Shown here: piece after piece, positions 6,667 through 61,191 of the stretch
Layout: each line of letters opens with the position of its first letter
How positions within the stretch are numbered: position 1 is the stretch's first letter
DNA from: Chrysemys picta bellii
Taxonomy: Eukaryota
Length of the DNA stretch: 64,000 bases
NCBI RefSeq assembly: GCF_011386835.1
Contig: NC_088802.1
Coordinates: 2,232,001-2,296,000, forward strand
Direction: 5' to 3'
Notes under the pieces: generated by a model
The model's input: only the letters and a program-made list of their open reading frames with translations
What the model was told of the DNA's origin: nothing
Database searches by the model: none
Made by a program: the position numbers and the translations under genes

Positions 6667-7957
6667 TCAAAGGTCAAGGTTCATGTAGGTGCGGAGGTCA
6701 CGCTCCCAGGCCTTTGCTTTGGCCTCTCTGCGACGGGCCTCTCTCTTCCCCACTGTAGCTGCCCGTTCTGTCCTAGGCTGCTGCTCCTTGGGCTGCGCCA
6801 CAGCACTGGGATCGTTAGCGTTGAAGTGGGTGACCTTGGGCCGGAGGTCGCTACGGAAGCCCAGGCCCTTCTGGTCCCTCTTGAGGACGGTCTGGACGGG
6901 GAATTTACGGCCGGTGCCCTCAGGCCCCAGCCCGGCCTCGCAGTCCCAGCCCCCCTTGACCATGAGCTGGAAGCCGACGTTGCTCTCGGGGATGTGGTAG
7001 CGGGTTGGAGGGAGCGGGTCGCGCCGGTTGAAGAGGTGGGCAGTGGAGCGTTCATGGAGCTCGACACTATCTTCGCTGTAATGTGTCTGGCAGACGGCAC
7101 AGTATTTTCTCTCCACTGGAATCCTCCTGATGGGGAGACAACGGGGTCAGCTGCTTCCAGGATGAGCATACTGGTTGACTCAGGGAGATGGGGAATGGGA
7201 CATGGGGCATTTCCCCTTTAGGGGCTGCTGGTTCCCATCCAGCCCCAAGTTGGGGGAACTGGCTGGTTAAGGCATGAGGGGAATGAGACATGGGGCCTTT
7301 CCTCTCTAGAGGTTGCTGTCTCCGATCCAGCCCCAGGGTGGGGGGACTGGCTGGGTCCAGGGCAGGGGAACAGAAGACTCACCTGGCCATCCTCTCCTCT
7401 GGCTGAACCGTTTCACGCTCCTGTAGGATCCTCACCACGTCCTGGTGCCCGGCTTCCTCGGCTAGGTCCACCGCGTCCCGCCCCTGCGACTCGCACACTC
7501 CCACCCATGCGGCTCCCCGGGTCAGCAGGTACCTCACAGCTTCCCCCCGGCCTGCGTAAGCGGCACACATCACCGCCGTCCAATAGTAACCGTCCCGATA
7601 GTTCACATCGCACCCCTCCCTCTCCAGCAGCCGCCGCAGGGTCCCCATGTCGCCCTCCTGGGCCGATCTCAGCAGGAGGTTCCCCCTACGAGGGTCCGTC
7701 TGCCCTGGCTGGGCGATGGGTGGCTCAGGCACCCCCGGGCGCCTCAGTGGGGCCTTGCGTTTCCGTGGGAGACTGGAGCTCTCGCCCGAGGCCAGGAGAC
7801 TCTCGTAGAAGCTCCGAGCTTCCTCGCCCTCCACGTCCCCCTCCTTTTCCCGGCGGTTGGCAGGGGAGCCGGCCCGTTTCCGGAGGTGCCCATCCTTCCA
7901 GCAGTCCGATTGCTCCCGGGCACGGGTGAAGGTGATGAGCTGGGGGCCGTGGTTCAT
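6667..7957 (-). CDS. GPANK1: G-patch domain and ankyrin repeat-containing protein 1, 344 aa, 2 coding exons
   Basis: Exons 7957-7383 and 7126-6667 (AG|gtgagt, cag|G; phase 2; 1035 nt). Motifs LITFTRA..WKDG, ankyrin region AWVGVCESQGRDAVDLAEEAGH, G-patch GGWDCEAGLGPEGTGR..VLKRDQKGLG and C-terminus AWERDLRTYMNLDL match human GPANK1 as recalled. Confidence 0.97.
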
Positions 7958-18509: not shown

Positions 18510-20012
18510 AGGGGACAGAGAGCAGAGACCCCCATGCTCTGCCCCAAGGCAGGACTATGCCAGGGAGTGGAAATAGACCCCCTGCTCACAGATCTCCTCC
18601 CCCTGCCCTGAAGGGATGGGGGTGCATCTTGGCTGGCACAGAGTAGAGGCTGATGAGATCCTGTGGCTTGGGGGCAGGGGGTGATCCTGGCTGGGGTGTG
18701 CCAGGCTGAAGTGGGGTGGGGAGAGGTGCCAGGTTCTCCCACTGCTGCAGAAAGGGCTGGGGATGTACCTGTGCCACAGCTCCGCAGAGGAGGCACCAGC
18801 TAGCCCCATGGCACCAGTAGGGAGCCCAGGCTGGCCCACTGGGGCCCCTCACCCACCTGGGGCAGCAGGTCCTGCTGCTCTGTGTCAGGGCAAGACACAA
18901 GGACAGGGTGGAGTTCACATGTGTAGAGCTGGTTCCTGGATGCAGTTTGGGGGCAGCTGGTGGGGCAGGGGCCCTGTGCCAAGGTGGGAGAGGGGCAGGC
19001 AGTGAGTGACCTCCCCCAGGGCCCTGCCCTGGCAGCTACTGGGTGAATGGTCTCTACGCAGGGCCCTGTGCTAAGGGGCTGCTGGGGAGGCCTGTGGGCA
19101 GGTCTGACCCCCTGGGTGTCTGGTGCCCACATCATGGGAAAGGGAGGGGACCCTGTTTCTATGGGGCTCCCTACATTTCAGCCCCTGCCCCATCCCTTCC
19201 ACAGCAGCTGGGTGAGTCCTGCTGTTTCCCCTGCAAACAGACCCCTACAGCCCCCTGCTAGCCCAGCCCTGGGCTCCCCCTGCCCCCACAGCTCCATTGG
19301 GGCCCCTCACTCCTGTACCCAGCCAAACAGCCCTCAAGGAAAGGGGGCAGTGGTGGGTCTGTCTGCACTAACCACGGGATCCCATTCTGCTCCCAGAGCT
19401 GGGAAGGGGATTCAGGCAGCTTGGCTCCCAGTCTCCCCTCCACTCCCCTCCCAGAGTCAGTGAGAACACAGGAGTCCCACTGCAGGTCCTGGGACACTTG
19501 TTCCTTATCACAGTAGTTTTGTGCCCTGGACGTTCTGAGCTGGGGATGGAAGTAGGGGGTTGGGAACACCACTGTCTATGGGCCATGTAAGGCCAGGGAA
19601 GAGAGGGGTGTGGGATAGGTGGATAGATAGAGGCATCTGTGGGGGTGGGAGAACCAGAAAGGGGGATGGATCCCATTTGGGGACCCCCCCCCCAAGTTCC
19701 CACCATCTACAGAAATGCAGGGATCCCCCTGAGTGAACCCAGCTACCCCAACAGCAGGGACTCTCAGGCCATTTATTAAGGGATGTCCAGGCACCCCTTC
19801 GGAGAAGGAAGTGTGGATCTCCAGAGGCAAAGTTTCAACTCACAGCTTAGTTCCCTCTTGGGATGTTGGAGATCTCCAATACTAGGAGTCACGCCAGCAG
19901 AGCCATGACCCATTCACACCAGCTGGGGACCCTGTCTCAGCCCATCATCGGGAAGACCCCACCCATGCAAAGACAGACACCAAATCCACATCCAGTCGAC
20001 AGATATTCAAGC

Positions 20013-20018
20013 TTTATT
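20013..20018 (-). terminator. Candidate polyadenylation signal of the one-domain gene A
   Basis: AATAAA on minus, ~670 nt downstream of the 20686 stop. Confidence 0.5.
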
Positions 20019-20685
20019 TGAGGGCCCCTGACTGACACCCAGGTAGCCTGGCAAATGCTAAAATCAAAAGGAAGTTTACATGGGGTTAAGATCTGTTGCA
20101 GCAGAAGTAGGGGCTCATTTGGGGTATGTCCAATGTCCACCCAGGGAAGCGATTACAGCTACCAGACTCCATCCCGAAGGGAGTGAAGATAGAGGCGAAG
20201 ACCGAGGTCGCTGGAGAGGGCGACAGAGATGAATAGACTGGTGTAAATCAGGATTAACCCTGTTTTCAGTGGAAACAAGGTCAGGATCAAGTCCTGAAAA
20301 GGCACCAGTTGTGGTTAGACAGGACTGAATCCTGACCTAGAACCCCAGCATGAATCCAGACCGAGTCCACCATCGTCAAAGGAGGCAATCCTTAAGTCAC
20401 ATCAACTTTTGAGTCTGTCTGGTTGACCTCTCACTGAGAGAAGGTCAAACTCTACCAACACCAGCAAACCTCAGAGCAGAATCCGGGTCATTGCCTGTAA
20501 CCCCCAAGACCCATTAGAATTATACCCAATATCTCTCACCCATGAACGTCTTCCACAATGGAAGAACAATGGTTTCTACTTTCTGGGGGAAGGGGAATCT
20601 GGGACAGTTTGCTTGTGAGTCTCTTCCACAATTAAACCATTCTGTTAATTGTACTTGGCTTGTTGAAGATCTAACCCCCCAGTAG

Positions 20686-21090
20686 CTAATACATCTTCTT
20701 CACCATCTCCAAGAGCGGTCCAGCCGGGATGTAGTTGACCATCTCCGCCACAGTCTTCACGATGTTCCTGCTGAAGACTCTGGCCACAGCAGTGTCCCAT
20801 CGGGGCATTTTGATGTTGTACTGGACTTGCCCTTCCACATGGAAGATGGATATTTCATTCTCCTGCGTGCCGGACACGAAGACCAGCACCGTGGTCTCGC
20901 TTTGGATGGTCATCCTGGCGTTCTGCTGGACACAAAGCGGCTCCTGGGAGAACTCACTCAGCGCTAGATTGAAACAGGCCTTGAGCTCCTCGGTCAGCCG
21001 CTTCCGGGACTCCAGACGCGTCCGGACCTGGAGAAGCCGCTCGATGCTCAGGGGTTCTGGGAGGGTGGATTTAACCACACACCCACCCAT
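20686..21090 (-). CDS. Uncharacterised 134-aa protein with one copy of the 98-aa domain (gene A)
   Basis: ORF MGGC..PEPLS..CF..A..F..EPLCVQQNARM..FVSG..ENEISI..G.VQY aligns with the repeats of 36065-38455; acceptor aatttccttcctttgtag| at 21142/21141; in-frame TGA two codons before cccATGG. Confidence 0.75.
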   Translation of the reverse strand: MGGCVVKSTLPEPLSIERLLQVRTRLESRKRLTEELKACFNLALSEFSQEPLCVQQNARMTIQSETTVLVFVSGTQENEISIFHVEGQVQYNIKMPRWDTAVARVFSRNIVKTVAEMVNYIPAGPLLEMVKKMY

Positions 21091-21981
21091 GGGTCATCCC
21101 CTGACCTTCACTGGGACTTGATCGCAGGAGACTAATACAATCTACAAAGGAAGGAAATTGGGGTTAGTTCCCTGGAGACCTGGGTTCACACCCATCCCCC
21201 CCTCACAAGTGAGATGAGTTTTCATTTGGTCTCAGCCTAGTTCGGTTAGTAGACCTAGTTGAAATAAACTGGAAACTGAGTAGACGGTCTTGTGACATGG
21301 ATGCTGCTGAGTTCAACACAATTTCTGGTCTCTACTTAGTCAGTGGAAGCCCCAGGGATAGAACCCAGGAGTCCTGGCTCCCAGCCCTCCCACTCAGAGT
21401 AGTCTATCTAAACATCCCATTTTACATACGGAGAAATGGAGGCACGGGCCGGGGGGGTGGGGAAGATACCTGACAAAGGTGGCTGGTGTTTTAAGATCTC
21501 CCAAGGGAATGCACCATTGTGTGGTCTTTAAGTCACCACCCTTGAGACTTCCAAGTGGGTCAGGAACGGGTGTCAGAACCTGGTGACTAGGGGTGGGCCC
21601 GAAATGGTTTTCCAATCCCAGAAACATTTGAGATGTCAAGAAAAATTCACTATTCTGCACTGGGATTGAGGTGAGCCCTTTCCGAGTCCTCTGTGTAAAA
21701 CCAGAGAGAGGCACCTGGTACGGACCCACCCCCTTATTTTGACCAAAAACTCCATCATGGACCCAAGTAATCGTCCCAACGAAGCAGTCTTTGACCCTTC
21801 CCCCTTCTGGCAGAAAGTTTCAGTTTCCACTAACTTTTGGGGGTCAAAATTCCCAGCCCGTCCTGCTCAATGCCCTTGCCCTCCCCATACTGCTGGGGCA
21901 GGGGGGTTAAAGTCCTGCTCCAGCTACATGGAAGAAAGCTACTGGCTTCCCCCCAGGTAGAGTTTCTCCAAGGTCGCTAAG

Positions 21982-22215
21982 GGTTACGTCTACACTGCAG
22001 TGCCAGCCCGCTGCACCGAATTGGAGTGCCCGGGTCAATTCGCTTGGGCTCAGAGCGACACAAGTGTAGACAGGCTCGGGCTAGAGACACGTCCACACCG
22101 CAGGGTTTGAGCCCAAGTCTAGCCCGAGCCTGACAACATCTACACTGCAATCTTATAGCCCCCAGCCAGCTGACCCAGGCCAGCCAGGGGGGTCTCATTG
22201 CCGTGTAGACGTACC
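21982..22215. mobile_element. PIF/Harbinger-type MITE
   Basis: TIRs GGTTACGTCTACAC / GTGTAGACGTACC; duplicate copy at 59630-59876. Confidence 0.75.
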
Positions 22216-22855
22216 TGGGGGCAGATACGTCCCCTCCACTCCAGGCTGTTCATGCTCAGCCAGAACCCCTGAACGTTCCCCATTACTCCCACACCATTGT
22301 TTGCCACTTAGCATGAAACCAGGGGTCAGATCCTCTCCCACACCCTAGGGATCAGCCCCCCTTTAACCAGCTGATTTACTTAGATTAACAGCAACTCAGG
22401 GCATGGACTATCCCAGCACAGCACAGCACAGCAGGTCCTGCAAGCTCAGATGGGACTAGATCCCAGGAGTCCTGACCCCCCACATGTGCTCTCCTCTAAC
22501 CCACTAGCCCCCACTCCCCTCCCAGAGCCAGGGAGAGAACCCAAGAGTCCTGGCTCCCAGCCCCCCTGCTCTAGCCACTGGGCCCCACTCCCCTCCCAGA
22601 GCTGGGGAGAGAACCCAGGCATCCTAGCCTTAAGCCCTACTATAATACACCTGTATACAGCAATTCCTCAGTTGACATACCCCCCCAGCAGTAGGTTCCA
22701 CAGGTTATTAAAGACACTCTTCAAGACACATTGGAAAGTTAAAGCATTCCTAGAACAGAGAACACAATACTAAAAGTTACAAGGGTTAAATAACAGGAAC
22801 AAGACTATAAGGACCCCTCTAGTCCTCCAAATCCTAGCCCCTCTTTAATCCTTAC

Positions 22856-23296
22856 CAGGTCAGGGGACTCTCCTGTAGCTTCCAGCCAAAAGAAAGACCA
22901 GACAACACATACCCCTCCAGCCACACACCTACACACAGCAATATAGTAGAACTAGTCACACTTGTGTCCTTTTTATAAGCAAGTGGCTCCCAAGGCAGGC
23001 TGGGAGTTGGGAGCTAGGAATGCTGGGAATTGTAGTTTCTTCATCAGTTTGCAAAAGGCTCCATTTCTGATTGGCCAGGGAACGAAAGGGATCCGGGCCC
23101 TACCATCTATCTAATACATTGGTCTTTTCTGCTCTTCCCTATCCAGGATATTAGCTCCGCTGTGATTGGCCCAGCCCACCCAGACAGCTGGGTCTCAAGG
23201 TTCTCCTGGCCACACCCTTCTCCTCTCTGATTGGTCAGTTCTTTAGAGCTTGGGGTGCCTGATTGGTCCCAAGGGGGGGTGTCCCAGCTATTTAAA
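22856..23296. promoter_or_regulatory. Divergent promoter of cassette A (minus-strand exon 1 plus galectin promoter)
   Basis: Minus TATAAAA at 22977-22971 and minus donor CTG|GTAAGG at 22856/22855; SBS GAATGCTGGGAATTGTAGT 23018-23036; ATTGG at 23070, 23118, 23165, 23230, 23262; plus TATTTAAA 23289-23296. Confidence 0.7.
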
Positions 23297-23369
23297 GCTC
23301 ATGGTTGGGTTAAGCCCCTATGGTGGTTGGTGCTGTGTGTGGTGTTGTGTTGTCTCTGGAGTAGCTGCA

Positions 23370-25775
23370 ATGGAGTGTGTGAGTTGTGGGAGTAGAGGGG
23401 TATTAAGGTTGGTTCTTTGGGGGGTGGGATGGGAGCTGTGGGAAGAGGTTGGTAGATATATAGGGCAGGAGGTCTGGTGGTAGGGGGTTGCTGGGTACTG
23501 GGGATATCTTTAATTCCTCTCCCTGGGCTGGGGGGGGGGCTGGTTGACCCCTAGTCCTGCCTCCTATCTGTATGGGGGAGTTGAGTCTGTCTCCTGGTAG
23601 CCAAGCCCCACCTGGTGACGGGGAAGCTGTGAGATCCCTGAGGTTGGGAGAGGGTGATTCCCTCTTCTAGGCCTGAGAGGGTCATGTTGAGGTGGGGGCA
23701 GGTGTAGTGGGCTGGAGGGGTCACAGCTTTGTTACCTGCAACCCTATGTGAAATTCATCTTCCTTGTTTGCTCCCCACCTGGTGCCCCCTAGAGGGGACA
23801 GGCCCCATTCCCTGAGCCAGCCAGTCCCTGCCCTGGGGCTGGATGGGTACTGGTGCCCCCTAGAGGGGACAGGCCCTTGCCCTATTCCCCCACCCCCTTG
23901 AGCCAGCCAGTCCCATGCCCTAGGGCTGGGTTGGGGCCTGTGCCCCATTCCCTGCCCCCTGTGGGGAGGGGTGCTGGGGGGTGCTCACCTCTCCCCCTTT
24001 CCCCAACCCCCAGGGGATGGTTCTGACCCACTTGAAGGTCCAGCCTGGTGAGTGCATTGCTGTGAAGGGGATGGTGCCACTGGATGCCAAGAGGTGAGTG
24101 TGGGCTGACGGGCATGGGGAGGGAAGGGTTAACCTGATCCTGGGGGGGGAATGCTGGGGTCCCCCTGCCCCCCAACAGCACAGTGGGGGACTCTCTGGGA
24201 CCCCAGGATGGGGCTCAGCCCCCCACAGGGGGCAGCATCTCCCTGCAGACCCCTCACCCCCTGGGTCTGCATCATCTCAGCCCCCCTGAATCCTCCAGGG
24301 CCCCCCTGCCTCAGCCCTGACCCCTTTCAGGGGGAGCTGTGGGGATGGGGTGTGTGCCAGTGGATTCCCCCATGGGATGGGGGGCTGGTCTCCTCAGGAC
24401 TGACCCCTGGGGTGTCCATGGCCCCAGCACCTTCTCTGTGGGGCTGGCTCTCAGTCCCCTGCATGGGATGAGCTCAGTGGGACAGAGCCCCACAGACTGT
24501 GGGGCCTGGGCTGCAGGGGGACTGGGGCTGGCGTTGGTCCCCTGATGCTCCTCTCCACCCCAGGAAGGGGCTGGAGGGTGGCAGAGAGGATGCTGGGAAA
24601 GCTGTGCCATAGGCTGGTGCATTGTGGGAAGCTCCCAGGTGATGCCCAGCAGGTGACCCTGCTGCTGAGGATGGTGGGAAACTGTCCCACAAGGCAGCAG
24701 GGCTGTGGCTTTAGCCCAGGGGATTCTGGGAGACCTGCCTGTGACCCAGAGCCTGTGGGGGTGACAGCAGGGGATGCTGGAGAATTCCCATGATGCAACG
24801 CATGTCACTGCAGGGGGCTCCATGATGCAGCACTGTCCCAGAGGATGCTGGGAAGCTTCCCACAATGCACCAGTGCAATAAATTGAGCAGAGGGAATTCT
24901 GGGAGATTCTCCCATGGTGCAGGGGGTGATGGGGAATTTCCCATGATCCCCTGTGTGGCAGAGGGGTGGCTGGAGGCTTCCCACAATGCAAAGTGAGTGG
25001 CTGTCCCTGTTTGGGGGTGGGTGGGGGGCTGGGGAAGCTGCCTGGCCCAGGTGGGGGGTCCCAGCCTGTCTCTCTCCCCTCCAGCTTTGCCCTGAACATG
25101 GGCCGGGCCGGCTCGGACCTGGCCCTTCACTTCAACCCCCGGTTCGAGAGCCATGGGGACGCTCGCATAATCATCTGCAACTCGCTGCAGGGCGGGGAGT
25201 GGGGGGAGGAGCAGCGGGAGCCGGACTTCCCCTTCCAGCCGGGGCAGGATACCAAGGTGAGGGGGGGACTGTCCAGGGGAAGATCACAGCTCCCATTCAT
25301 GATGTGAGATGGGTGGGGGGCAGGGCATTGTGGGGTGGGGGGAGAAGGCTACCCTCAAAGAGAGGGATCTACCATCTGTGGGGCACTGTCTGGGGAAGAC
25401 TGCAGCTCCCATTTGCTGGGGTCAACTGAATGGGGGGGAGGGGAGGCAGGGCACTGTGTGGGGAAGATCACAGCCACCCCATCTCAAGCAGATGAGTCTA
25501 TTGCAAGTGGGGGATGTCTCAGTCCTTGTTGGGATCAGGGGAGGGGGGTGTAAGGTTGGGATGATATTTAACCCTGTAGGGGGCAGGTGTCTCTGGCTCC
25601 ACCCCTCACCCTCTGGCTCCTCCCCCAGATCTGCATCTCCTTCGATGCCCAGGAGCTGACGGTGGCGCTGCCGGGGGAGCAGCAGCTGAAATTCCCCAAC
25701 AGGCTGGGGCTGGAGGCCATCGAATTCTTCTCAGTGGAGGGAGACTTCAGGGTCAAGTCCATCAAGTTCAAGTAG
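23370..25775 (+). CDS. Galectin-1-like prototype galectin, copy A, 135 aa
   Basis: Exons 23370-23378 (MEC), 24014-24093, 25085-25256, 25629-25775 = 9/80/172/147 nt, the LGALS1-type structure; sugar-binding residues H44 N46 R48 H52 N61 W68 E71 R73 all present; AATAAA 25828-25833. Confidence 0.95.
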
Positions 25776-26560
25776 CTCCTCCCCTTCCCCATGGCTCCAC
25801 CCCCTCCATGGGGGGTTAAAATCTACCAATAAACATGAATCTGCTCATCACCCTGTGCTGTCCCTGGGCTCGTTATTCACCCCAGTGCAGCCTGGGAGCT
25901 GGGATTGGGGCCTGGCCCATGGGAGCTGGCTGGGTGGAGCTGGGCAGGCAGGGGGCACTAGACCCCAGGGGGGTGTGTGTGTGTGTGGGGGGGGGGATTC
26001 TCCTTTGGGGACATGAATCCCTCTGGGATTCATACAGGGGAGGGGGGGAATCTAGGGGTGCAATACTAGAACATTGCCTTGTGGTTGGGAGCCAGGACTC
26101 CTGGGTTCTCTCCCTCCAGAGAGGTTTCCCCTGCCATGGCAGGGAGAGGACAGGGGGTGTCACACCATTTTTCACCTTCTCTTCCACGTTGAATTTTTAT
26201 CTTGACTGTCTCTCTGGCTAGTAGGCGCATGAGGTGAAAGGTCCTATTTCCCCCTTACCCTAGAGCCAGCTGCTGGCCTCATCCTGGGGCCAGATTAGAG
26301 CTAGGCCACCTATGGGGGAACAGGTCCCATTGCCTAAACCGGCTGTTCTCATGCTGGAGTCTGTGGGCCCAGGGGGTCCATGGACACTGCACAGGGGTCT
26401 ACAAAATAGTATGGGGGGGAACCTCACTGCTCACATGTGTTCAGAGCAGATGCATGGGAGGTGGGGGTGTCATCCTCTACATTTGTGCCTTCCATTAGCC
26501 CCTGGTGCTGATGGGGGGGGGGGGGGGGGGGCAGAGCAGGGGGGTCCCCTGGGTGAGCTT

Positions 26561-27413: not shown

Positions 27414-29059
27414 TTATGGCCCCCAATCTTCAGCCTTCACTGGCTGGTACAGTGCTATCATTTGCTGGTATGCAATTTGATTAGTCATTCGTCTGATCAG
27501 TGCCACTATACAGGGAGCAAAGCAAGCTAGGATTAATAGGGTTACAATAAAGAGTACAAAGAGGAGGAAGCCTTTTCGAAGCCATCCCAGTTGCGGTAAC
27601 CAGGAAGTAACCCAGTCCATATTCCACCCTCCCCAGGTTTGGACGGGGACATGGGTTAACTTTCTCATTTCCTTTGTTAGCTGCTTTACCGCTTTTCCAT
27701 TATCGTCAATTTGTAAGCAGCAATTAGACTCATTTAATTTTGCACAAACCCCTCCTTCCTCCGCCAGTAAATAGTCAAGGACTATATGGTGCTGATAGAT
27801 TGCACTCCTCATTTGGGTTGATTGATCGGCCTAGAGATCGAGAGCTGCGGCTGTTTGGTTAGTTAAGATTTCCAAGACAGCCTGTAACCTAATTATTCGA
27901 TTTAGGTTATAAATAGGTTCTCTGGCCCCGGATAGTAACTCATTGGGATTCCAAGTGGCCGGTCCATAATGTTGTATAATCCTTTCGGGTGGCCACTCCT
28001 GAGCTCCCCACTTTTGGGAGCTTCCGGCAGTCAGGGTGGAATCCACAAACCACCTTTCTCTAATTAAATCATCATATACCTTAATTCCCAATTTATTTCC
28101 TGCATCTGGGGTAATAGAAAGAACAAGGGTCTTATATATCCAACATAACATATCCCAGACCAATTTGGAGGCAATCTTCGGTAGGCATAGGACCCGCAGA
28201 TCCAATAATGGCCCTTTAGAGCCCAGGTTCCATTAGCAAAGGGGCCATCCCAGGTTTCCTCGTTCTCGTCGTCCTTTAGATGGTCAAAATATAAAGGATT
28301 ACCTGGCCCTAAAGGTCCCCCCACCATCCCATCAGCTGAGTTGCAATAATTACATCTCCACGCCCCAGCTCCTGCTTTCCAGACACAATCGCAGCCCCAT
28401 TTTGGCTGTTTGGTGTTAGACCAGAATTGTTTAAAACCCCATACTCGAGTTCCATTCTGATTCTGCCATGCCCATTGAAACCACCGTACCACGTGGTCCT
28501 TACTAGTGGTATTGTCTAGCTGGCAACTCGGGAATAGGGCATCGAAGAACCCATCCCGTCCTACCACCCTGCAACCTTCGGTTGTAGGGTAGTATTGTTT
28601 GGAGCATTTCACCCAAGTATTATTGGTGAGCCTCACATGGGTCTGGTTCCATCGCCCCTGATATCTAGAACAGTCACACGGGCGACAATAAGGGTCCCAG
28701 CAGTCAAACCCTGGGGATAGAGTCCAATCACACTTGCTTTCTCCCAAGTACACTCCCTCCCGCCTTGTTCGATTAAGGCAGAGAATACCCATTCCAGAAG
28801 AATAAAGTCGCCAGGGGCTACTATCCTCAGTCCAAACTCCCGTTCCATCGTGGACTATACTCAAATTGCTGAGCCACCATTTGGGCTGTACCGGCTGGGC
28901 TACCCAAGGCCATTCATTTAATTCCCCGGGGCCTCCACACACCCAACAGTTACTGAGGTTAAAGGATTTTGCTATTGTCTCCCCCAGCTGTAAAAACCTA
29001 TTTTCCCAACCATAATAGTGGTGGAAGTACATAAACAAAGATATTAACAATAATTTCAT
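27414..29059 (-). pseudogene. env: ERV1 env (ERV3/HERV-I-like), one frameshift and one nonsense codon
   Basis: CWVCGG; WPPERIIQHYGPATW; immunosuppressive domain YQHHIVLDYLLAEEGGVC followed by a CX7CC motif; TM GFLLFVLFIVTLLILACF; frameshift near 28100; TAG at 27833-27831. Confidence 0.9.
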
Positions 29060-32034
29060 TATCTTTTTCTAAACAGTTCCTTTAGTCCGTCCAGTTGCTG
29101 ATACTCACAGGTGGAGTCTTCACCTGTGCCACCCCGGGCGTCCGGAGCCGGGGCGGGCAGAGGGCCGGTGTCCTCTTCCACTGGTTCAATCTCCGGGTTA
29201 GGGTTCAGAAACCGCTTTACCCGTGTATGGTGTGCCCATTTGTCACTCCCAAGAACTTTAACTGCAGCTTGGCTGATGAGCGAGACAGTGTGTGGGCCAT
29301 CCCACCGTGGTGTAAGGGGGTCACGCTGCCACTTCTGGAAAGGGTATGTGGCCCATGGCAGGCCTCCCATTGGGGTGGAAGGGCCACACCCCTTTTGGTT
29401 GGTTCGTTGACAAACAGGGCAATTACTAACAATTCTCTGGGCTTCCATGTGCATGCCCAGCCCCTTAAGGGATTGGGTGGCCAGATCAACCATTGCCCCT
29501 GACCCCATATGTCCCTCCTTATGTATGTGCCGAAGAATTTTCTGAAGCACTGTTTGGGGGACAAAAATCTCCCCCCCTGGTAATTTCCACCATCCAGAGG
29601 GAACCTGCCGGGCCCCCGCAGCCTGCGCGTGGCACACTTCCTCAGTTGTGTATTGAGGAGGGGAGTTTTGAACTTCTGTATCTTGAATCAAGAGGAGCCA
29701 TGAGGCCCCTTCCCGTGCGGCCTCCTTTGCGGCCTGATCAGCCAATTGATTATATCTACGTTGTTCGGCCTCCGGGGCCCTTCCATGGGCCTGCACATGT
29801 ATTACGGCGACCCGGAGGGGAAGCATTAGGGCCTCAAGAAATGTTTTGATGAGACTCCCATGTGCGATTCTTTGACCTGACGCTGTGATAAATCCCCTTT
29901 CTCTCCACAGGGTCCCGTGAGCATGTACCACCATGTAGGCATAGCGACTATCAGTATACAGGTTAATAGTTTTCCCGGTCCCCAACCGGAGAGCCTCAAT
30001 AAGAGCCACTAGTTCCGCTGCTTGGGCGGACAAATTAGGACTAAGTTTAAACTTGTATACTTCTTTGTCCTTAATTACTACTGCTGCTCCGGTATACCTT
30101 TTTCCATCTATCACATAACTGGACCCGTCAACGTATCCCTCAATTTCAGGATTGGGCCAAGGCAAGTCTGAGAGGTCAGGGCGGGGCTTGGTTTCCTGTT
30201 GTAAAACCTCAATACAGTCATGAGTGGGACCAGTCTCATGGGAGACTCGAGGATCGGGCAATAGGGTAGCTGGGTTGAGGGAGCTAACTGTCCTAAAGGT
30301 TAAGTTAGGGGCTAGTAAGAGCCCTACTTCATATCTGGTATGTCGGCTGGGATTTAGATGCTTTTCCCCAGCACCTGTCCCCAGTATTTGAGGCACCCCG
30401 GGGGGAACCAGAACCTCAGTGTTCCCCCCCAGGGTCAACTTTTCAGCCTCCTGTACAAGAAGAGCGGTGGCTGCCACGGCCCGTAAGCAGGCGGGCCACC
30501 CCTTGGCAACAGGGTCCAACACCTTTGAGTAATATCCAATGGGTCGCCAGGTTGGTCCCGACCTTTGACATAGAACTCCAGAAGCTACCCCTCCCCTTTC
30601 ATGAACGTATAGGGTAAATGGTCTCCAGGGGTCTGGCAGGGCTAGAGCGGGAGGCTGAACCAAGGCCTCTTTTAGCTCTCTAAATGCTTTTTCCATCTCT
30701 CTGGTCCATGTCCAATGGAGCAGACCTTCTTTAGTTAAATATTCATACAGTGGTTTGGCTCTTCCCCCGTAGTCAGGGATCCAGAGCCGACAAAAGCCAG
30801 TCAATCCCAGGAAGGCCCTTAATTCTCGGGGGTTCCGGGGTTGGGGACAATTAAGTATCACCTGGATTCTTTCTTTACCCAGACTACGACTTCCCTGACA
30901 CAAATAATACCCAAGGAAAGTGACCTGCTGCTTAACCAGTTGTGCTTTTTCCTTTGAGACCTTATATCCCTGTGCCCCAAGGTAATTAAGGAGTTCTATA
31001 GTTTGCTCTTGACAGGCTGCCTCTGTTTCAGAACTTAAGAGCAAATCATCACAACATTGGACTATGTTACATGAAGGGGGTTTAGCCAGGAATGGGGCGA
31101 GGTCCCTTCTTAACTGGCAACCAAAAATCTCAGGTGTAGAGGTAAGTCCTTGTGGGACAATGGTCCAAACGTATTGAGCTTTGTAGTGAGTATCTGGGTC
31201 CTCCCACTCAAAGGCAAACAGTCTCTGAGACTCCAGATCAAGGGGGATGGAAAAGAAGGCATCTTTTAAATCTATAACAGAGAACCAACTGTGATTTTTG
31301 GGAACTTGGCCCAGAATAGTATGGGGATTCGGGACAACTGGATAGGGGGCCTCTATTAACTTGTTAATCTGTCTTAGATCCTGGACCAACCGATACTGGC
31401 CATTAGGCTTAGGCACTCCCAGTATCGGAGTATTGTATGGGGACGTACCCTCCCTGAGCCATGTATACTGCAGAAACTTTTGAATCAGAGGTTTTAACCC
31501 GATTCTAGTGGTCAACTTAAGAGGGTATTGTCGAATTCGGACCGGCCTGCTTCCTTCCTTGAGGGAAATATGCACTGGGGAAGCATTCCGGGCCCGAGCG
31601 ACGCCTCCCTCCTCCGCCCAAACCTCAGGGTTAACTCCTGCCAATTGGCTCCCTCCATTCCTTCCCGGAAATTCCGGGGACTGATTTCTAGCGCTTGTCA
31701 GGGCCATCTGGTAATTGGAGGAGTGCTGTTTAGGAAGTCTAACTTCCATAGTCCCATTGTCGAATGAGATTTCTGCCTGCACTTTAGTAAGGATATCTCG
31801 ACCGAGGAGCGCGATGGGACAAGAGGGACTGCAAACAAACTGGTGGGAGATTTGACAGTCCCCTATTTTCACTAGAAGAGGCAAAGTTTTTTTTTTTTCC
31901 AAAGATGTAGTTTGTCCCTCTATGCCTTGGACCATGGCACGTCCCCGGGCTCTACCTCGGGGAGCCTTATTCATGGGGAGCAAACTAAGGGTGGCCCCAG
32001 TATCAATAAGGGCTTCAATTGGGCGGCCCTCCAC
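29059..32034 (-). pseudogene. pol: ERV1 pro-pol, open frame but RT motif altered and integrase core deleted
   Basis: Protease LIDTGA; RT with QCCDD in place of YxDD; RNase H YVDGSS/AELVAL/YTDSRY; integrase HHCC joined directly to C-terminal PRWDGPHTV. Confidence 0.92.
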
Positions 32035-32039
32035 TTTAA

Positions 32040-32150
32040 ATTTAACCGTGAGATCCAGACTGGCAACTTGCGCCGCCAGGAGGGGCCGCTGGGTCCCCCG
32101 GCCCCCCTTTCCTCACATCCTTCTCTCAGGGCCATGGCTAAAACACGGGC

Positions 32151-36064: not shown

Positions 36065-38455
36065 TTAGTCCCTGCCAGACACTTTGTAGTTCATGAGAAG
36101 TCTAGCAATCCATGGCCAACCTCCTGACACCTGAACCGTGTACTGGATTCTCCCCTCTTCACCTTCACACACGGTGATTAAATTCTCCCCCCACCCGGAG
36201 ACAAACTCCAGCTCCTGCCCATCCCACCGGATCAGCAGCCTGGCGTTCTCCAGCACGCACCGGGGCTCCTGGCAGAAACCCTGCCAGGCTCGGTCAAAAC
36301 AGGTTCTCAGGGCGTCAGTGTCTCTATGACAGGACCCCAGTTCACTCAACACGCTCCGTAGGGTGTCAGCACTCAGTGACAGCCGGCGGGCGCGTAGCTG
36401 AGCCAGGTACACATGCACTGGGATCTTCACAACACGGTACTGGGCTTTCCTGTCCCTATAGCTCACGGAGATCTCACACTGCCCCTCCCCTGAGAGGAAC
36501 TGCAGGCTCCCCCCATCCCACCGGATCCTCATCCTGGCGTTCCCTTGCACCCACGGGGGCTCCTGGCTGAACTGGGAAATGGCCTCCCCAAAGCAGCCGC
36601 TCAGCTCCTCACCCAGCCCCCCCCAGCGCCACATTCTGTCCCGCACCCTCGCTAGGTCTGCGACACTCAGCGGTTCTGAGCTGGCATGTGACCAAGTCAC
36701 TGGCCTGTCCCCTCCCAGCTCTGTGATGTGATACTGGGGTCTCCCATCGGCGAGGAGCACCGAGATCTCACACTGCCCCTGGCCGGAGACAAACTCCAGC
36801 TCCTCCCCGCCCCACCGGATCAGCAGCCTGGCGTTCTCCTGCACACACCGGGGCTCCTGGCAGAAACCCTGCCAGGCGCAGTGAAAACAGGCTCTGAGAT
36901 CATCTCTGTCCCCCATACATGACCCCAGTTTGTCCCGCACTCTCCACAGCGTGTCAACGCTCACTGGTTCTGGGCGGGCGCGTAACCGAGCCAGGTACAT
37001 GTGCATAGGGAGCTCCCCAACCTCGTACTGGGGTGTCCCGTCCCTACAGTACACAGAGATCTCACACTGCCCCTCACCCGAGAGGAACTGCAGGTTCCCC
37101 CCGTCCCAGCGGATCAGCAGCCTGGCGTTCCCCTGCACACACCGGGGCTCCTCGCGGAAACCCTGCCAGGCACAGAGAAAACAGGCTCTCAGAGCGTCAG
37201 TGTCTCCATGACAGGACCCCAGTTCACTCAACACTCTCCGTAGGGTGTCAGCGCTCAGTGACTCTCGGCAGGTGTGTAGCCGAGCCAGGTACACAGGCAC
37301 TGGGATCTTCACAACACGGTACTGGGGTTTCCCATCCTCATAGCGCACAGTGATCTCACATTCCCCCTTCCCCGAGGTGAACTCCAGCTCCTCCCCACTC
37401 CACCGGATCAGCAGCCTGGCGTTCTCCTGCACACACCGGGGCTCCTGGCGGAAACCCTGCCAGGCGCAGTGAAAACAGGCTCTGAGATCATCTCTATCCC
37501 CCATACATGACCCCAGTTTGTCCCGCACACTCCACAGGGTGTCGGCACTCAGTGGTTCTGGGTGGGCGCGTAACCGAGCCAGGTACATGCGCATGGGGAG
37601 CTTCCCAATGTCATACTGGGGTCTCCCGTCCCTGTAGCGCACGGAGATCTCACATTCCCCGTCCCCTGAGAGGAACTCCAGGCTCCCCCTGTCCCACTGG
37701 ATCCCCATCCTGGCATTCCTCTGCATGCACGGGGGCTCCCGGCTGAACTGGGAAATGGCCTCCCCAAAGCAGACACTCAGTTCCTCACCCAGCGCCCCCC
37801 AGCGCCCCAGTCTGTCCCGCACCCTCGCTAGGTCTGCGACACTCAGCGGCTCTGGGCTGGTGTGTGACCAAGTCACTGGCCTGTCCCCTCCCAGCTCTGT
37901 GATGTGATACTGGGGTCTCAGCTCGGTGTGGAGCACCAAGATCTCACACTGCCCCTGGCCGGAGATGAACTCCAGCTCCCCCCCGTCCCAGCGGATCAGC
38001 AGCCTGGCGTTCTCCTGCACACACCGGGGTTCCCGGCAGAACCTCTCCAGGGCGAGGTCCAGGCAGCTGCCCAGCTCCTCGCCCAGCTCCCCGCATCGCT
38101 CCAGTCCGTCCTGCGCTCCCTGCAGGGTCTCCATGCTCAGCAGCTGGGGGCGGGCGCGTAACCTGGCCAGACACACATCCCCCGTGGGCTCAGCGACGTG
38201 GCACTGGGGCTCCCCATCGGTGTCACACACGCGCATCTCACACTCCCCGTCCCCTGAGGTGAGCATCAGCTCTGCCCCCTGGCTTGGGATGGCCCTCCTG
38301 CAGCTGCCCTGTACACCCGGGGGTTTTCTGGGGGACTCACACAGGCCCCGAGCCAAAGAGCTGCTCTGGGGTTTGGCCTTTTCCTCCCACATCTTCACTC
38401 TTGGCTGCACAGTCTGTTGTTTTTTCTCATTCTCCGTTTCCGGAGCCTGAACCAC
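36065..38455 (-). CDS. Uncharacterised tandem-repeat protein, 8 x 98-aa domain (gene B); first in-frame ATG at 38392
   Basis: 796-codon ORF; NAR motif at aa 149, 247, 345, 443, 541, 639, 737 and a degenerate unit at 51; no indels; homologous to gene A. Confidence 0.85.
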   Translation of the reverse strand: MVQAPETENEKKQQTVQPRVKMWEEKAKPQSSSLARGLCESPRKPPGVQGSCRRAIPSQGAELMLTSGDGECEMRVCDTDGEPQCHVAEPTGDVCLARLRARPQLLSMETLQGAQDGLERCGELGEELGSCLDLALERFCREPRCVQENARLLIRWDGGELEFISGQGQCEILVLHTELRPQYHITELGGDRPVTWSHTSPEPLSVADLARVRDRLGRWGALGEELSVCFGEAISQFSREPPCMQRNARMGIQWDRGSLEFLSGDGECEISVRYRDGRPQYDIGKLPMRMYLARLRAHPEPLSADTLWSVRDKLGSCMGDRDDLRACFHCAWQGFRQEPRCVQENARLLIRWSGEELEFTSGKGECEITVRYEDGKPQYRVVKIPVPVYLARLHTCRESLSADTLRRVLSELGSCHGDTDALRACFLCAWQGFREEPRCVQGNARLLIRWDGGNLQFLSGEGQCEISVYCRDGTPQYEVGELPMHMYLARLRARPEPVSVDTLWRVRDKLGSCMGDRDDLRACFHCAWQGFCQEPRCVQENARLLIRWGGEELEFVSGQGQCEISVLLADGRPQYHITELGGDRPVTWSHASSEPLSVADLARVRDRMWRWGGLGEELSGCFGEAISQFSQEPPWVQGNARMRIRWDGGSLQFLSGEGQCEISVSYRDRKAQYRVVKIPVHVYLAQLRARRLSLSADTLRSVLSELGSCHRDTDALRTCFDRAWQGFCQEPRCVLENARLLIRWDGQELEFVSGWGENLITVCEGEEGRIQYTVQVSGGWPWIARLLMNYKVSGRD

Positions 38456-57217: not shown

Positions 57218-58811
57218 ATGTTTCTTCTTAGCAACAAGAAGAAAGTCAAGGAAAGTGTGGGCCCCTTACTGAATGAGGGAGGCAACCTAGTGACAGAGGA
57301 TGTGGAAAAAGCTAATGTACTCAATGCTTTTTTTGCCTCTGTCTTCACAAACAAGGTCAGCTCCCAGACTGCTGGACTGGGCAGCACAGTATGGGGAGGA
57401 GGTGACCAGCCCTCTGTGGAGAAAGAAGTGATTCGGGACTATTTAGAAAACCTGGACGAGCACAAGTCCATGGGGCCAGATGCGCTGCATCCGAGGGTGC
57501 TAAAGGAGTTGGCGAATGTGATTGCAGAGCCATTGGCCATTATCTTTGAAAACTCATGGCGATCGGGGGAGGTCCTGGATGACTGGAAAAAGGCTAATGT
57601 AGTGCCTATCTTTAGAAAAGGGAAGGAGGAGGATCCGGGGAACTACAGGCCAGTCAGCCTCACCTCAGTCCCTGGAAAAATCATGGAGCAGGTCCTCAAG
57701 GAATCAATTATGAAACGTTTAGAGGAGAGGAAAGTGATCAGGAACAGTCAGCATGGATTCACCAATGGGAAGTCGTGCCTGACTAACCTAATTGCCTTCT
57801 ATGAGGAGATAACTGGCTCTGTGGATGAGGGGAAAGCAGTGGATATGTTATTCCTTGACTTTGGCAAAGCTTTTGATACGGTCTCCCACAGTATTCTTGC
57901 CGGCAAGTTAAAGAAGTATGGGCTGGATGAATGGACTGTAAGGTGGATAGAAAGCTGGCTAGATCGTCGGGCTCAACGGGTAGTGATCAATGGCTCCATG
58001 TCTAGTTGGCAGCTGGTTTCAAGCGGAGTGCCCCAAGGGTCAGTCCTGGGGCTGGTTTTGTTTAATATCTTCATTAATGATCTGGAGGATGGTGTGGACT
58101 GCACTCTCAGCAAGTTTGCAGATGACACTAAACTAGGAGGCGAGGTAGATACACTAGAAGGTAGGGATCGGATAGAGAGGGACCTAGACAAATTAGAGGA
58201 TTGGGCCAAAAGAAACCTGATGAGGTTCAACAAGAACAAGTGCAGAGTTCTGCACTTAGGACGGAAGAATCCCATGCACTGCTACAGACTAGGGACCGAA
58301 TGGCTAGGTAGCAGTTCTGCAGAAAAGGACCTAGGGGTCACAGTGGACGAGAAGCTGGATATGAGTCAACAGTGTGCTCTTGTTGCCAAGAAGGCTAACG
58401 GCATTTTGGGCTGTATAAGTAGGGGCATTGCCAGCAGATCGAGGAACGTGATCGTTCCCCTCTATTTGACATTGGTGAGACCTCATCTGGAGTACTGTGT
58501 CCAGTTTTGGGCCCCACACTACAAGAAGGATGTGGAAATATTGGAAAGAGTCCAGCGGAGGGCAACAAAAATGATTAGGGGGCTGGAGCACATGACTTAT
58601 GAGGAGAGGCTGAGGGAACTGGGATTGTTTTGTCTGCAGAAGAGAAGAGTGAGGGAGGATTTGATAGCTGCTTTCAACTACCTGAAGGGGGGTTCCAAAG
58701 AGGATGGAGCTCGGCTGTTCTCAGTGGTGGCAGATGACAGAACAAGGAGCAATGGTCTCAAGTTGCAGTGGGGGAGGTCCAGGTTAGATATTAGGAAACA
58801 CTGTTTCACTA
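57218..58811 (+). mobile_element. CR1 LINE ORF2 (RT) segment, truncated at both ends
   Basis: 546-aa open frame with [39 protein letters not shown]; ends at TTTCACTA before the 3'UTR. Confidence 0.95.
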
Positions 58812-59629
58812 TTTCACCATCACAAAGTGAGATGAGTTTTCATGTGGTCTCAGCCTAGTTGTTAGTAGACCTAGTTGAAATAAACTGACCAGTTTCCCTC
58901 CCCCTCCTTGTGACATGTATGGTGCTGAGTTGAACATCATTTCTGGTCTCCACTTAGAGGAGTCTAGTGGGTTAGAGTGGGGGGGGGGGAGGAGGAGGAG
59001 CCAGGATTCCTGGGTTCTCACCCCAGCTCAGGGAGGGGAGGGGCGGGGCAGGGCAGCTGGGAGCTAGGACTCTTAGGTTCTATCCCTGGGCCTTCCACTG
59101 ACTGTATAAATGTCCCATTTTGCAGATGGAGAAATGAAGGCACAGGGGGGGGGGCGGGGAGAGAAGATACTTGACAAAGGTGGCTGCTGTTTTAAGATCT
59201 CCCAAGGGAATGCACCATTGTGTGGCCTTTAAGTCACCACCCTTGAGACTGCCGTATTGGCGAACCGGGAAGTGGGTCAGGAATGGGCATCAGAACCTGG
59301 TGACTAGGGATGGGCCCAAAATGGTTTTCCTATCACAGAAACATTTCAGATTTCAAGAAAACTTCGCTATTCTACACCGGGATTGAGGTGATCCCTTTCC
59401 AAGTCCTCTGTGTAAAACCAGAGAGAGGCTCCTGGGACGGACCCTGCCCCCTTCTGGCTGAAAGTTTCAGTTTCCACTAACTTTTGGGGGTCAAAATTCC
59501 CAGCCCATTCTGCTCGATGCCCCTGCCTTTCCCATACTGCTGGGGCAGGGGGGTTTAAGTCCTGGTCCAGCTACATGGAAGAAAACTACTGGCTCCTCCC
59601 CTAGGTAGAGTTTCTCCAAGGTCACTAAG

Positions 59630-59876
59630 GGTTACGTCTACACTGCAGTGCCAACCCGCTGCACCAAATTAGAGTGCCCAGGTCGATTCGCTTGGGCTCG
59701 GAGCTACAAGTGTGTAGACATTAGGGCTCGGGCTAGAGCCAGGCCCACCCTGCAGGGTTTGAGCCCAGGTCTAGCCCAAGCCTGAACATCTACACTGCAA
59801 TCTTATAGCCCCCAGCCCACACCCCAGTCAGCTGATCCAGTCCAGCCAGGGGGCCTCATTGCCGTGTAGACGTACC
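59630..59876. mobile_element. PIF/Harbinger-type MITE (duplicate of 21982-22215)
   Basis: TIRs GGTTACGTCTACAC / GTGTAGACGTACC. Confidence 0.75.
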
Positions 59877-60482
59877 TGTGTTCAGATACTGCCCCTCCAC
59901 TCCAGGCTGTTCATGCTCAGCCAGAACCCCAGAACTTTCCCAATGATTCCCACACACTCTTGTTTGCTACTTGCACAAAACCGGGGGTCAGATCATCCCC
60001 CACACCCTAGGGATCAGTCCCCCTTTAACCATCTGATTTACTCAGATTAACAGCAACTCAGGGCATGGACTGTCTCTGCACAGCATGGCAGGTCCTGAAA
60101 GCTCAGATGGGAATAGAACCCAGGAGTCCTGACCCCCCACATGTGCTCTCCTCTAACCCACTAGCCCCCATTCCCTTCCCAGAGCTGGGGAGAGAACCCA
60201 GGAGCCCTAGCTCCCAGCTCCCCCTGCTCTAACCCACCCAACCCCACTCCCCTCCCAGAGCCAGGGAGAGAACCCAGGCATCCTAGCCTTAAGCCCTACT
60301 GTAATACACCTGTCTGCAGCAATCCCTCAGTTAAAGTACCCCCCAGACATGGGTATTAAAGACACTCATCAAGACACATTGGAAAGTTAAAGCATTCTTA
60401 GGAAAAAGTACTAAAAGTGATAAAAGTTAAATAACAAGAACAAGCCTATAAGAACCCCACCCCTCAAATCCTAACCCCTTAC

Positions 60483-60937
60483 CAGGTCAGGGGACTCTCC
60501 TGTATCTTCCAGCCAAAAGAAAGACCAGACAGCACATACCCCTTCAGCCACACAACTGCATACAACTGCACACAGCAATATAGTGAAACCAGCCCCATTT
60601 GTGTCCTTTTTATAAGCAAGTAGCTCCCAAGGCAGGCTGGGAGTTGGGAGCTAGGAATGCTGGGAATTGTAGTTTCTTCATCAGTTTGCAAAAGGCTCCA
60701 TTTCTGATTGGCCAGGGAATGAAAGGGGTCCGGGCCCTAGACACCATCTGTCTAATACATTGGTCTTTTCTGCTCTTCCCTAGCTGGGAATATGAGCTCC
60801 ACTGTGATTGGCCCAGCCCACCCAGACAGCTGGAGCTCAAGGTTCCCCTGGCCACACCCCTCTCCTCTCTGATTGGTCAGTTCTTTAGGGCTTGGGATGC
60901 CTGATTGGTCCCAAGGGGGGTGTCCCAGCTATTTAAA
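60483..60937. promoter_or_regulatory. Divergent promoter of cassette C
   Basis: Minus donor at 60483/60482; minus TATAAAA 60614-60608; SBS 60655-60673; five ATTGG; plus TATTTAAA 60930-60937. Confidence 0.7.
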
Positions 60938-61000
60938 GCTCATGGTTGGGCTAAGCCCCTATGGTGGTTGGAACTGGGTGTTGTGTCTGGAGTAGTTATA

Positions 61001-61151
61001 ATGGAGTGTGTGAGTTGTGGAAGCAGAGGGGTGTTAAGGCTGGTTCTCTGGGGGTAAGATGAGAGCTGTGGGAAAAGATTGGTTGATATGTGGGGCTGGA
61101 GGCCTGATGGCAGGGGGTTGCTGGGTACTGGGGGTATCTTTAATTCCTCTC

Positions 61152-61191
<40 letters not shown>

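Follow-up and report, generated by a model that had tools for sequence, protein, structure and literature searches.

The window analyzed here, a stretch of 64,000 nucleotides from the genome of the painted turtle Chrysemys picta bellii, contains a short gene, designated Gene A, together with the following genes and elements (all coordinates are those of the window):

1484-2056: NKp30-like V-set exon
6670-7146, minus strand: G-patch gene
about 12.5-16 kb: exons of CSNK2B
23331..25772, plus strand: prototype galectin gene, head-to-head with Gene A, recognized by Pfam Gal-bind_lectin on exon translations
29062-32112: endogenous retrovirus with a long open pol frame
36065-38455: Gene B, tandem copies of the domain found in Gene A
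about 61.4-63.8 kb: second galectin gene

The NKp30-like exon, the G-patch gene, and CSNK2B indicate an MHC class III setting. LINE fragments are also present in the window. The Gal-bind_lectin matches of the galectin gene lie at 24930-25304 (E 1e-14) and 25572-25772 (E 2e-7), and a galectin contig starts at 23331, after the adapter, and departs from the genome at 23379 for letters matching 24016, where exon 2 is located; the lectin-domain exons follow at ~25.1 and 25.6 kb. Self-comparison revealed that the segment 21200-26115, which holds the intron, exon 1, and promoter of Gene A along with the galectin gene, is duplicated at 58817-63757 with 81-85% identity, and that a LINE reverse-transcriptase ORF adjoins the duplication breakpoint. 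This duplicate contains no second coding exon of Gene A.

Gene A comprises the following features:

20686..21090, minus strand: coding region of 134 codons plus TAG, beginning MGGCVVKS
22856..22942 (5' end approximate), minus strand: exon 1, a noncoding 5' UTR, with contigs joining 22856 to 21141
21142..22855, minus strand: intron in the 5' UTR, GT..AG, holding dispersed repeats
19995 (about)..21141, minus strand: exon 2, with 51 nt of 5' UTR, the entire coding sequence, and ~690 nt of 3' UTR
20013..20018, minus strand: polyadenylation signal AATAAA, with contig ends 12-22 nt downstream
22971..22977, minus strand: TATA box TATAAAA, read from the sequence ~30 nt upstream of the inferred transcript start
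22978..23330, no strand assigned: bidirectional promoter serving both Gene A and the galectin gene, with five CCAAT boxes
22860..22910, minus strand: upstream ORF (uORF) in exon 1, 16 codons plus TGA, beginning MCCL and ending RVP
21095..21097, minus strand: upstream ATG out of frame with the main ATG and 7 nt ahead of it, opening an 8-codon overlapping uORF
21070..21090, minus strand: N-terminal heptapeptide MGGCVVK, candidate lipidation site
20767..21060, minus strand: domain of 98 residues (11-108), from the HMM envelope and AlphaFold pLDDT
20689..20766, minus strand: C-terminal tail (residues 109-134), predicted amphipathic helix with a conserved YIP motif

The gene structure was derived from contigs of four public runs placed on positions 19800-23400, whose RNA status is presumed and whose strand was taken from the splice sites. 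The 5' UTR was analyzed exon by exon, while the coding region is contained in a single exon. The joint from 21141 to 22856 skips 1714 bases that end in CT..AC on the plus strand, equivalent to GT..AG on the minus strand, and it is present in runs X1 and X4, which come from different organisms and two studies. As read from the sequence, the donor at the end of exon 1 (22856) is GTAAGG, and the acceptor is a pyrimidine tract followed by TAG. Contig depth lies between hundreds and about a thousand over 19995-21141 and 22825-22945 and falls to ~0-4 in unique intron sequence, a contrast that is expected for RNA. Record 24 of run X5 spans 19991-21143 with no internal joint, so the coding sequence and the 3' UTR form one exon, and contigs from three runs have their 3' ends at 19991-20001.

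The pieces placed on exon 1 extend to 22930. Additional information on the 5' end came from a distant turtle (59% protein identity), for which six transcript contigs, drawn from six runs, have matching 5' ends ~131 nt upstream of the same ATG; three of the six are fused directly to sequencing adapter. The 5' ends of L002-L004, some of which carry adapter, align to about 22942. Because the leader of the distant turtle aligns to exon 1 of the painted turtle, the transcript is expected to start near 22942. Caretta retains exon 1 at 82% identity and has a TATA-like box at the same place, and its promoter piece, exon 1, splice sites, and coding exon are collinear with the painted-turtle locus. The TATA boxes of Gene A and the galectin gene are separated by ~350 bp, an interval that includes the five CCAAT boxes.

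An antisense ORF of 128 aa overlaps that of Gene A, so the length of the ORF is not significant by itself, and the reality of the gene is instead established by homology and transcription. The ORF reported by the initial annotation at 20686-21090 (minus strand, 134 codons) is genuine, as homologues exist and spliced transcripts cover the locus. The proposed start at the MGGC codon also holds in the transcripts: exon 1 is noncoding, an in-frame TGA lies two codons before the main ATG in the mature mRNA, and this ATG is the first in-frame start. Gene A is thus a genuine TATA-driven, two-exon turtle gene, spliced and polyadenylated, whose entire protein is encoded by exon 2.

The leader carries two further ATG codons. 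The uORF of exon 1 has an identical start and end in Caretta (16 codons) and in the distant-turtle transcripts L002-L007, where it is 13 codons long. L001 shares the out-of-frame ATG close to the main start, Caretta has one at another position, and Mauremys and L002 have none. Around the main ATG, Caretta, Mauremys, and L002 carry A at -3 together with G at +4, while the painted turtle and L001, the other two of the five sequences read, carry C at -3.

The protein encoded by Gene A has a size of 15 kDa. A word-indexed protein search returned five orthologues, from turtles only (Caretta, Chelydra, Mauremys, and two run assemblies), with 59-95% identity and E-values of 3e-77 to 2e-43. They are 127-149 aa long, collinear, and aligned with no internal gaps, and every one of them starts with MGGC. 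A second word search with the orthologue alignment gave the same five proteins and no orthologue outside turtles. Comparison with the 95%-identical sequence (7 synonymous and 8 nonsynonymous changes) gives a Nei-Gojobori dN/dS ratio of 0.33, and comparison with the most distant turtle gives 0.75-0.80. A value of 0.75 over the deep turtle divergence shows weak constraint, and Gene A is, judging from these comparisons, kept open yet evolving fast, as many immune-region genes do.

The initial annotation connected the Gene A protein with galectins, which can act on the cytosolic membranes where it placed the protein. In this genome the adjacency and the bidirectional promoter stand, but the pairing is absent in Caretta and Mauremys: no galectin exon was found within 10 kb of the Caretta or Mauremys orthologue, or of the gecko relative. 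The pairing is therefore a feature of the lineage of this genome, and it is weak evidence for a functional link. The Gene A protein has no Gal-bind_lectin domain according to Pfam, this domain occurring only in the neighboring gene. A TRIM gene is located downstream of the Mauremys orthologue.

A tblastn search of the window with the Gene A protein detected seven further copies of the domain (residues ~9-108), arranged in tandem on the same strand at 36128-38149, with 37-50% identity to Gene A and E-values of 1e-22 to 9e-14; these are the repeats of Gene B. A profile combining Gene A and its orthologues with the repeats of Gene B was then searched against 1.84 billion cluster representatives, of which 72 matched at E<=1e-3 and 33 at E<=1e-30, with E-values down to 0. 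Many matches were run assemblies, and 30 of the 72 were looked up for organism. The named representatives come from turtles (Chelonia, Caretta, Eretmochelys, Lepidochelys, Pelodiscus, Chelonoidis, Gopherus, and Mauremys), a crocodilian (Alligator), and squamates (Paroedura, Elgaria, Anolis, Pogona, Phrynocephalus, Hemicordylus, Thamnophis, and Naja), and all of these reptile proteins are labeled uncharacterized or hypothetical. The one exception to the non-avian reptiles is the acorn worm Ptychodera flava, whose protein matches moderately well (hhalign probability 92.5%, E 5e-7 across 75 columns), and no bird, mammal, amphibian, or fish occurs among the 30 representatives looked up. On the basis of these comparisons, Gene A almost certainly belongs to the reptile domain family typified by Gene B, which extends over turtles, crocodilians, and squamates.

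The alignment of 105 domains has the consensus PxPLS..L..VR..L....L..CF..A...F..EP.CVQ.NARL.I...G..L.F.SG.G..EI.V....G...Y, so that the residue pattern recorded by the initial annotation turns out to be that of the family. Conserved columns include L14 (96%), C39 (88%), E50 (93%), P51 (86%), N57 (88%), F71 (90%), G74 (92%), and Y91 (91%). The suggestion that Gene A encodes a single-domain protein was borne out by one HMM envelope, residues 11-108, which scores 160 bits for the 95%-identical orthologue P0001 and 146.7-160.3 bits across P0001-P0005, the set on which the scores were taken and to which the window's own protein does not belong. The same annotation could name no family for the domain, and this agrees with the database searches, since the Gene A protein matched zero Pfam families at E<=10 and zero NCBIfam families at E<=1, and PDB sequences gave no match with either the protein or the 105-domain profile. 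Matches of long repeat proteins of the family to DUF6374, Peripla_BP_7, HTH_HVO_0163_N, bDLD1, and Glyco_hydro_65C proved to be sums of ~20-residue fragments, none of which passes alone. A description of the domain family in connection with turtle MHC or galectin genes was not found in the literature.

AlphaFold was run with 13 sequences and then with the alignment of 105 diverse domains, and pLDDT was 80-91 for residues 11-98 in the former case and 91-96 for residues 11-100 in the latter. The second model predicts helices at 16-28, 34-47, and 52-55, followed by strands at 58-63, 68-72, 78-85, and 88-94; helices at 98-120 and 124-133 are predicted with low-to-middling confidence, and the N-terminal 8-10 residues are unstructured. 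The domain is thereby shown, at the level of prediction, as an alpha/beta unit of ~98 residues in which three helices pack on a four-stranded meander. The three helices had been anticipated correctly, but the expected number of about five strands was one too many. A Foldseek search with the AlphaFold model returned nothing at E<=1e-3 in the PDB or in BFVD, which contains predicted viral folds, and there is a strong suspicion that the domain may represent a new fold.

Some individual candidates were compared with the model. Its structural similarity to the C-terminal domain of REDD1/RTP801 (PDB 3LQ9) does not rise well above background over the domain. OTU proteases are listed repeatedly in the weak Foldseek rows, and the fold has no catalytic Cys-His pair of the kind found in OTU or other papain-like cysteine proteases. 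A disulfide between Cys39 and Cys53 was also rejected: Cys53 is conserved in 51% of the domains as opposed to 88% for Cys39, and 48 of the 105 domains have the first residue and not the second, so that the lone conserved Cys39, lacking a conserved partner, gives no indication of a disulfide.

The initial annotation regarded Gene A as the founder of its family, a view that the domain tree does not uphold. In the maximum-likelihood tree of the 105 domains (98 columns), which is poorly resolved and unrooted, the six Gene A sequences form a single clade (SH-aLRT 97) that is nested, not basal, within a group of loose support that also holds the final, membrane-proximal domains from paralogues of Pelodiscus, Alligator, and snakes, while the Gene B-type repeats form a separate clade. 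In addition, orthologues of Gene A are known only from turtles, while the family also occurs in crocodilians and squamates. Gene A could equally be a derived, trimmed-down paralogue, and no feature identifies it as ancestral.

The N-terminus had been read as compatible with myristoylation plus palmitoylation. The motif of N-myristoyltransferase (NMT) is M-G-[^DEFRWY]-X-[^DEKR]-[ACGST]-[KR], from Castrec et al. 2018 as quoted in PMC9018777. M1, G2, G3, C4, and K7 are invariant in the six turtle sequences; Gly2 and Gly3 agree with the motif, position 5 is Val or Ala and thus none of the excluded D, E, K, or R, and Lys7 agrees with the motif at position 7, where Lys or Arg is favorable and not obligatory. 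Position 6 is Val in the painted turtle, and its orthologues read Ile, Pro, Ser, Pro, and Ser there, so four of the six turtles fall outside [ACGST]. Cys4 is placed as dual acylation demands, since a Cys within positions 3-6 stands beside the first anchor, the modification itself being putative. Hence Gly2, Cys4, and Lys7 are present as the proposal had it, and they are invariant as well, but position 6 departs from the NMT motif in most of the turtles.

Experiments on the heptapeptide of G-alpha-o bear on both positions. Replacement of Ser6 with Val (and also with Arg, Asn, or Phe) left the G-alpha-o N-terminal heptapeptide largely cytosolic and nuclear (PMC9018777), while earlier work cited in the same paper had Val tolerated at position 6. 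When the Cys was moved to position 4 (MGNC), the construct was palmitoylated as well as the wild type, and it shifted to the plasma membrane and endocytic compartments (PMC9018777). Relatives of Gene A display a variety of N-termini: the N-terminus of a gecko paralogue with three domains reads MGACIPK and continues in a stretch very similar to Gene A, a sea-turtle single-domain paralogue begins MGNCWCSC and fits the full NMT motif, a Chelonia four-domain paralogue begins MGQTNGK, and some squamate relatives keep the Cys and have Asp at position 2 (MDKC..., MMDPC...). Conservation of the N-terminus does not exceed that of the whole protein, with five of the first ten columns invariant against 61 of 134 overall. 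Taken together, N-myristoylation of the Gene A protein would be doubtful, and association with membranes through Cys4, the tail, or both has somewhat better prospects, a little short of even.

Membrane anchoring is a recurrent theme in the family. For the Pelodiscus, tortoise, and alligator members, hydropathy scans predict two transmembrane (TM) segments that bracket the domain array, one ahead of it and one immediately behind, and for many squamate members they predict a single TM segment ahead of the array; Anolis and others have an N-terminal hydrophobic segment, and several members have hydrophobic or amphipathic tails. Gene A has neither a signal peptide nor a TM segment. The helical hydrophobic moment of its protein peaks in the tail (residues ~93-125; 0.49-0.56 for windows starting at 93-108), which aligns in position with the second TM segment of the paralogues and has in common with it an Arg-Asn...Ile-Pro spacing. 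Acidic di-leucine motifs in the N-termini of the paralogues do not match the canonical spacing, and no claim is made for them.

The topology of the relatives introduces a complication. The charges flanking the first TM segment follow the positive-inside rule, with a cytosolic N-terminus, and this rule predicts that the domains of the TM paralogues lie outside the cytosol. N-glycosylation sequons are ~9-fold denser per residue in the domain regions of TM members, mainly those of snakes, than in members that lack a TM segment (0.85 vs 0.09 per 100 residues). Gene A, lacking signal peptide and TM segment, is expected to be made in the cytosol, and it would then act on the cytosolic face of membranes or leave the cell by an unconventional route. 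A cytosolic location would differ from that of the membrane-spanning relatives, and this topology question is the main weakness of any mechanism offered for Gene A.

The preferred reading, to which we assign a probability of about 45%, is that the product of Gene A is a small peripheral membrane protein that presents one binding domain at a membrane surface. S-palmitoylation of Cys4 would anchor the protein, whether or not Gly2 is N-myristoylated too, and the amphipathic tail, sited where the paralogues have a TM helix, would add to the hold on the membrane. The putative binding site would consist of the conserved polar residues Ser15, Cys39, Glu50, Gln55, Asn57, Ser73, Tyr91, and Arg104. This mechanism is favored by the invariance of Gly2, Cys4, and Lys7 in an N-terminus that is otherwise predicted to be disordered and is variable, by the comparable starts of the gecko, sea-turtle, and Chelonia paralogues, by the palmitoylation of Cys4 in the MGNC construct, by the TM or hydrophobic-tail anchors predicted in many paralogues, and by the hydrophobic moment and placement of the tail; Val6, outside the NMT set, the unexceptional conservation of the N-terminus, the predicted extracytosolic position of the domain in TM paralogues, and the weak constraint speak against it. 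The setting in the MHC class III region, near galectin and NKp30-like genes, and the fast evolution suggest that the role may be immune-related.

Alternatively, Gene A may encode a soluble cytosolic or nuclear protein that has no lipid anchor, its MGGC..K being kept by initiation context, N-terminal processing, or contact with the domain, which seems rather unlikely overall. A G at +4 is favored by the Kozak context as well, but this context cannot account for Cys4 and Lys7, and a Gly2 accompanied by a Cys close by is seen in three distinct branches of the family, whose members are commonly membrane-anchored. Solubility would nevertheless suit the residues at position 6 in four of the six turtles, the cytosolic S6V model peptide (PMC9018777), the unexceptional conservation of the N-terminus, and the Asp2 of some squamate relatives. 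A different solution to the topology question is that the protein is acylated and then exported independently of a signal peptide to the outer face of the cell, as is the HASPB protein of Leishmania, and acts beside the galectin, itself unconventionally secreted. Such export would bring the domain to the same side as in the TM paralogues and would fit the head-to-head arrangement of the two genes; yet it is entirely inferential and improbable, given that Caretta and Mauremys lack the galectin pairing, that myristoylation itself is doubtful, and that the lone Cys39, with no conserved partner, gives no hint of an oxidizing compartment. Equally speculative is a broader scenario in which the domain would be a new fold used by reptiles on both sides of the membrane, with Gene A as a lipid-anchored form exported to the surface or the endolysosomal lumen, where it would cooperate with or control the co-transcribed galectin and the TM paralogues in an MHC-linked recognition module that has no mammal or bird counterpart.

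The remaining alternatives question the gene rather than its location. The ORF might be a decaying or nonfunctional remnant, one repeat split off from a Gene B-type gene and still transcribed although its protein is unneeded. The dN/dS of 0.75-0.80 against the most distant turtle points in this direction, as do the upstream ATGs, which could reduce translation, and the absence of the painted-turtle protein itself from the protein collection searched. A remnant is nonetheless very improbable: six turtle sequences that range down to 59% identity all keep the ORF intact, with a similar length and the same start, the closest sequence gives a dN/dS of 0.33, Caretta retains the promoter, exon 1, the uORF, and the splice sites, and the context of the main ATG is strong in three of the five sequences read. 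Least credible of all is that the ORF represents a known domain family or a transposon or viral gene; the endogenous retrovirus and LINE reverse-transcriptase ORFs within the window and the recurrence of OTU proteases in weak Foldseek rows lean toward it, and the Pfam, NCBIfam, PDB, and BFVD searches described above away from it.

What is new at this locus is a protein domain, modeled with high confidence, for which neither sequence searches (Pfam, NCBIfam, PDB) nor fold searches (PDB, predicted viral folds) detected a relative. Across reptiles it occurs in several architectures, namely as a single copy, as 2-20 tandem copies, with a lipid motif, and with one or two TM segments, and Gene A is the smallest natural unit of the family, which makes it the obvious construct for work on structure and ligands. 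Gene A lies in the MHC class III region with CSNK2B on one side and the galectin gene on the other, in the company of NKp30-like and repeat-domain genes, and may therefore mark a reptile-specific immune gene system. If the protein is lipidated despite its noncanonical position 6, it would offer a natural test case for the limits of NMT recognition.

Some features of Gene A recall systems that are already known. The N-terminal acylation motif of HASPB reportedly consists of a Gly and a Cys. Like Gene A, Leishmania HASPB (PMC3491706) is a small hydrophilic protein that has no signal peptide, but the two have no sequence relationship, and export of the Gene A protein is conjecture. The SH4-type N-termini of Src-family kinases, G-alpha, and the MGNC-Nt7 construct (PMC9018777) have Gly2, Cys4, Lys7, and allowed residues at positions 3 and 5 as in Gene A, which differs in having Val at position 6 (Ile, Pro, or Ser in the orthologues), an unrelated domain, and an acylation that is putative. 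The systems that have the ~98-residue domain and its consensus in common with Gene A are the uncharacterized tandem proteins of reptiles, that is Gene B and the LOC entries of Pelodiscus, Chelonoidis, Alligator, Anolis, Thamnophis, and Paroedura, among others. These tandem paralogues contain 2-20 copies of the domain and often TM segments, whereas Gene A combines one copy with an MGGC start, a predicted amphipathic tail, and orthologues known only in turtles.

Gene A and the galectin gene are transcribed divergently, and three features lie at this locus:

22978-23330: intergenic interval separating Gene A from the divergent galectin gene
22860-22910, minus strand: upstream open reading frame (uORF) in Gene A's 5′ UTR exon, with counterparts at about 7730-7780 of the Caretta locus sequence (L008) and in the 5′ leader of a transcript contig from a distant turtle (L002)
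20735-21121, plus strand: long open reading frame opposite Gene A, found in Caretta at 9967-10341 of L008 (minus strand in the locus)

The intergenic interval has a TATA box at either end and five CCAAT boxes, all of them on one strand, and the galectin transcript starts at 23331, its first exon ending at about 23378. On the other side of the interval, the uORF in the leader of Gene A retains its start (MCCL) and its end (RVP followed by the stop codon) in the painted turtle, Caretta, and the distant turtle, with lengths of 16, 16, and 13 codons, respectively. This frame may function as a regulatory peptide uORF. The frame antisense to Gene A is open in Caretta as well; since the Gene A strand is the one supported by splice orientation, by the poly(A) signal, and by homology, this antisense frame looks like the ordinary mirror ORF of a coding exon.

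Part of this locus occurs twice, as positions 58817-63757 and 21200-26115 form a segmental duplication with 81-85% identity. The duplicated segment carries the intron, exon 1, and promoter of Gene A together with the galectin gene, without the Gene A coding exon, and a LINE reverse-transcriptase ORF (57218-58855) adjoins the breakpoint. The orphan copy of exon 1 may splice to other sequence or be dead. Within the Gene A intron, the stretches 21252-21493 and 22462-22703 have depths in the thousands to tens of thousands in all runs and are linked to each other by many spurious joints in the run contigs; both are dispersed repeats, with further copies at 15.9-16.2, 17.5, 59-60, and 63.7 kb. The window also holds an endogenous retrovirus (27417-32112, minus strand), whose 1017-codon open frame encodes protease, reverse transcriptase, RNase H, and integrase domains and is followed by more long open frames.

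Other reptiles likewise show clustering of the domain family, with several members sharing one scaffold of about 200-250 kb in the alligator (KYO32677, KYO32682, KYO32684, and KYO32685) and in the garter snake Thamnophis sirtalis (LOC106551329 and LOC106551331). In the paralogues P0012 (Pelodiscus), P0022 (Chelonoidis/Gopherus), and P0025 (Alligator), a predicted transmembrane helix flanks the domain array on both sides, and the C-termini are short, basic, and Cys-containing. In the predicted topology, their domains lie outside the cytosol, in contrast to Gene A. Beyond the reptiles, a 795-aa protein of the acorn worm Ptychodera flava (P0050) matches the reptile domain profile at residues 555-629 and in two weaker stretches (summed E value of 5e-16; hhalign probability of 92.5%). 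If this match is real, the domain would be far older than the reptiles, and elsewhere it would have been lost or have diverged past recognition.
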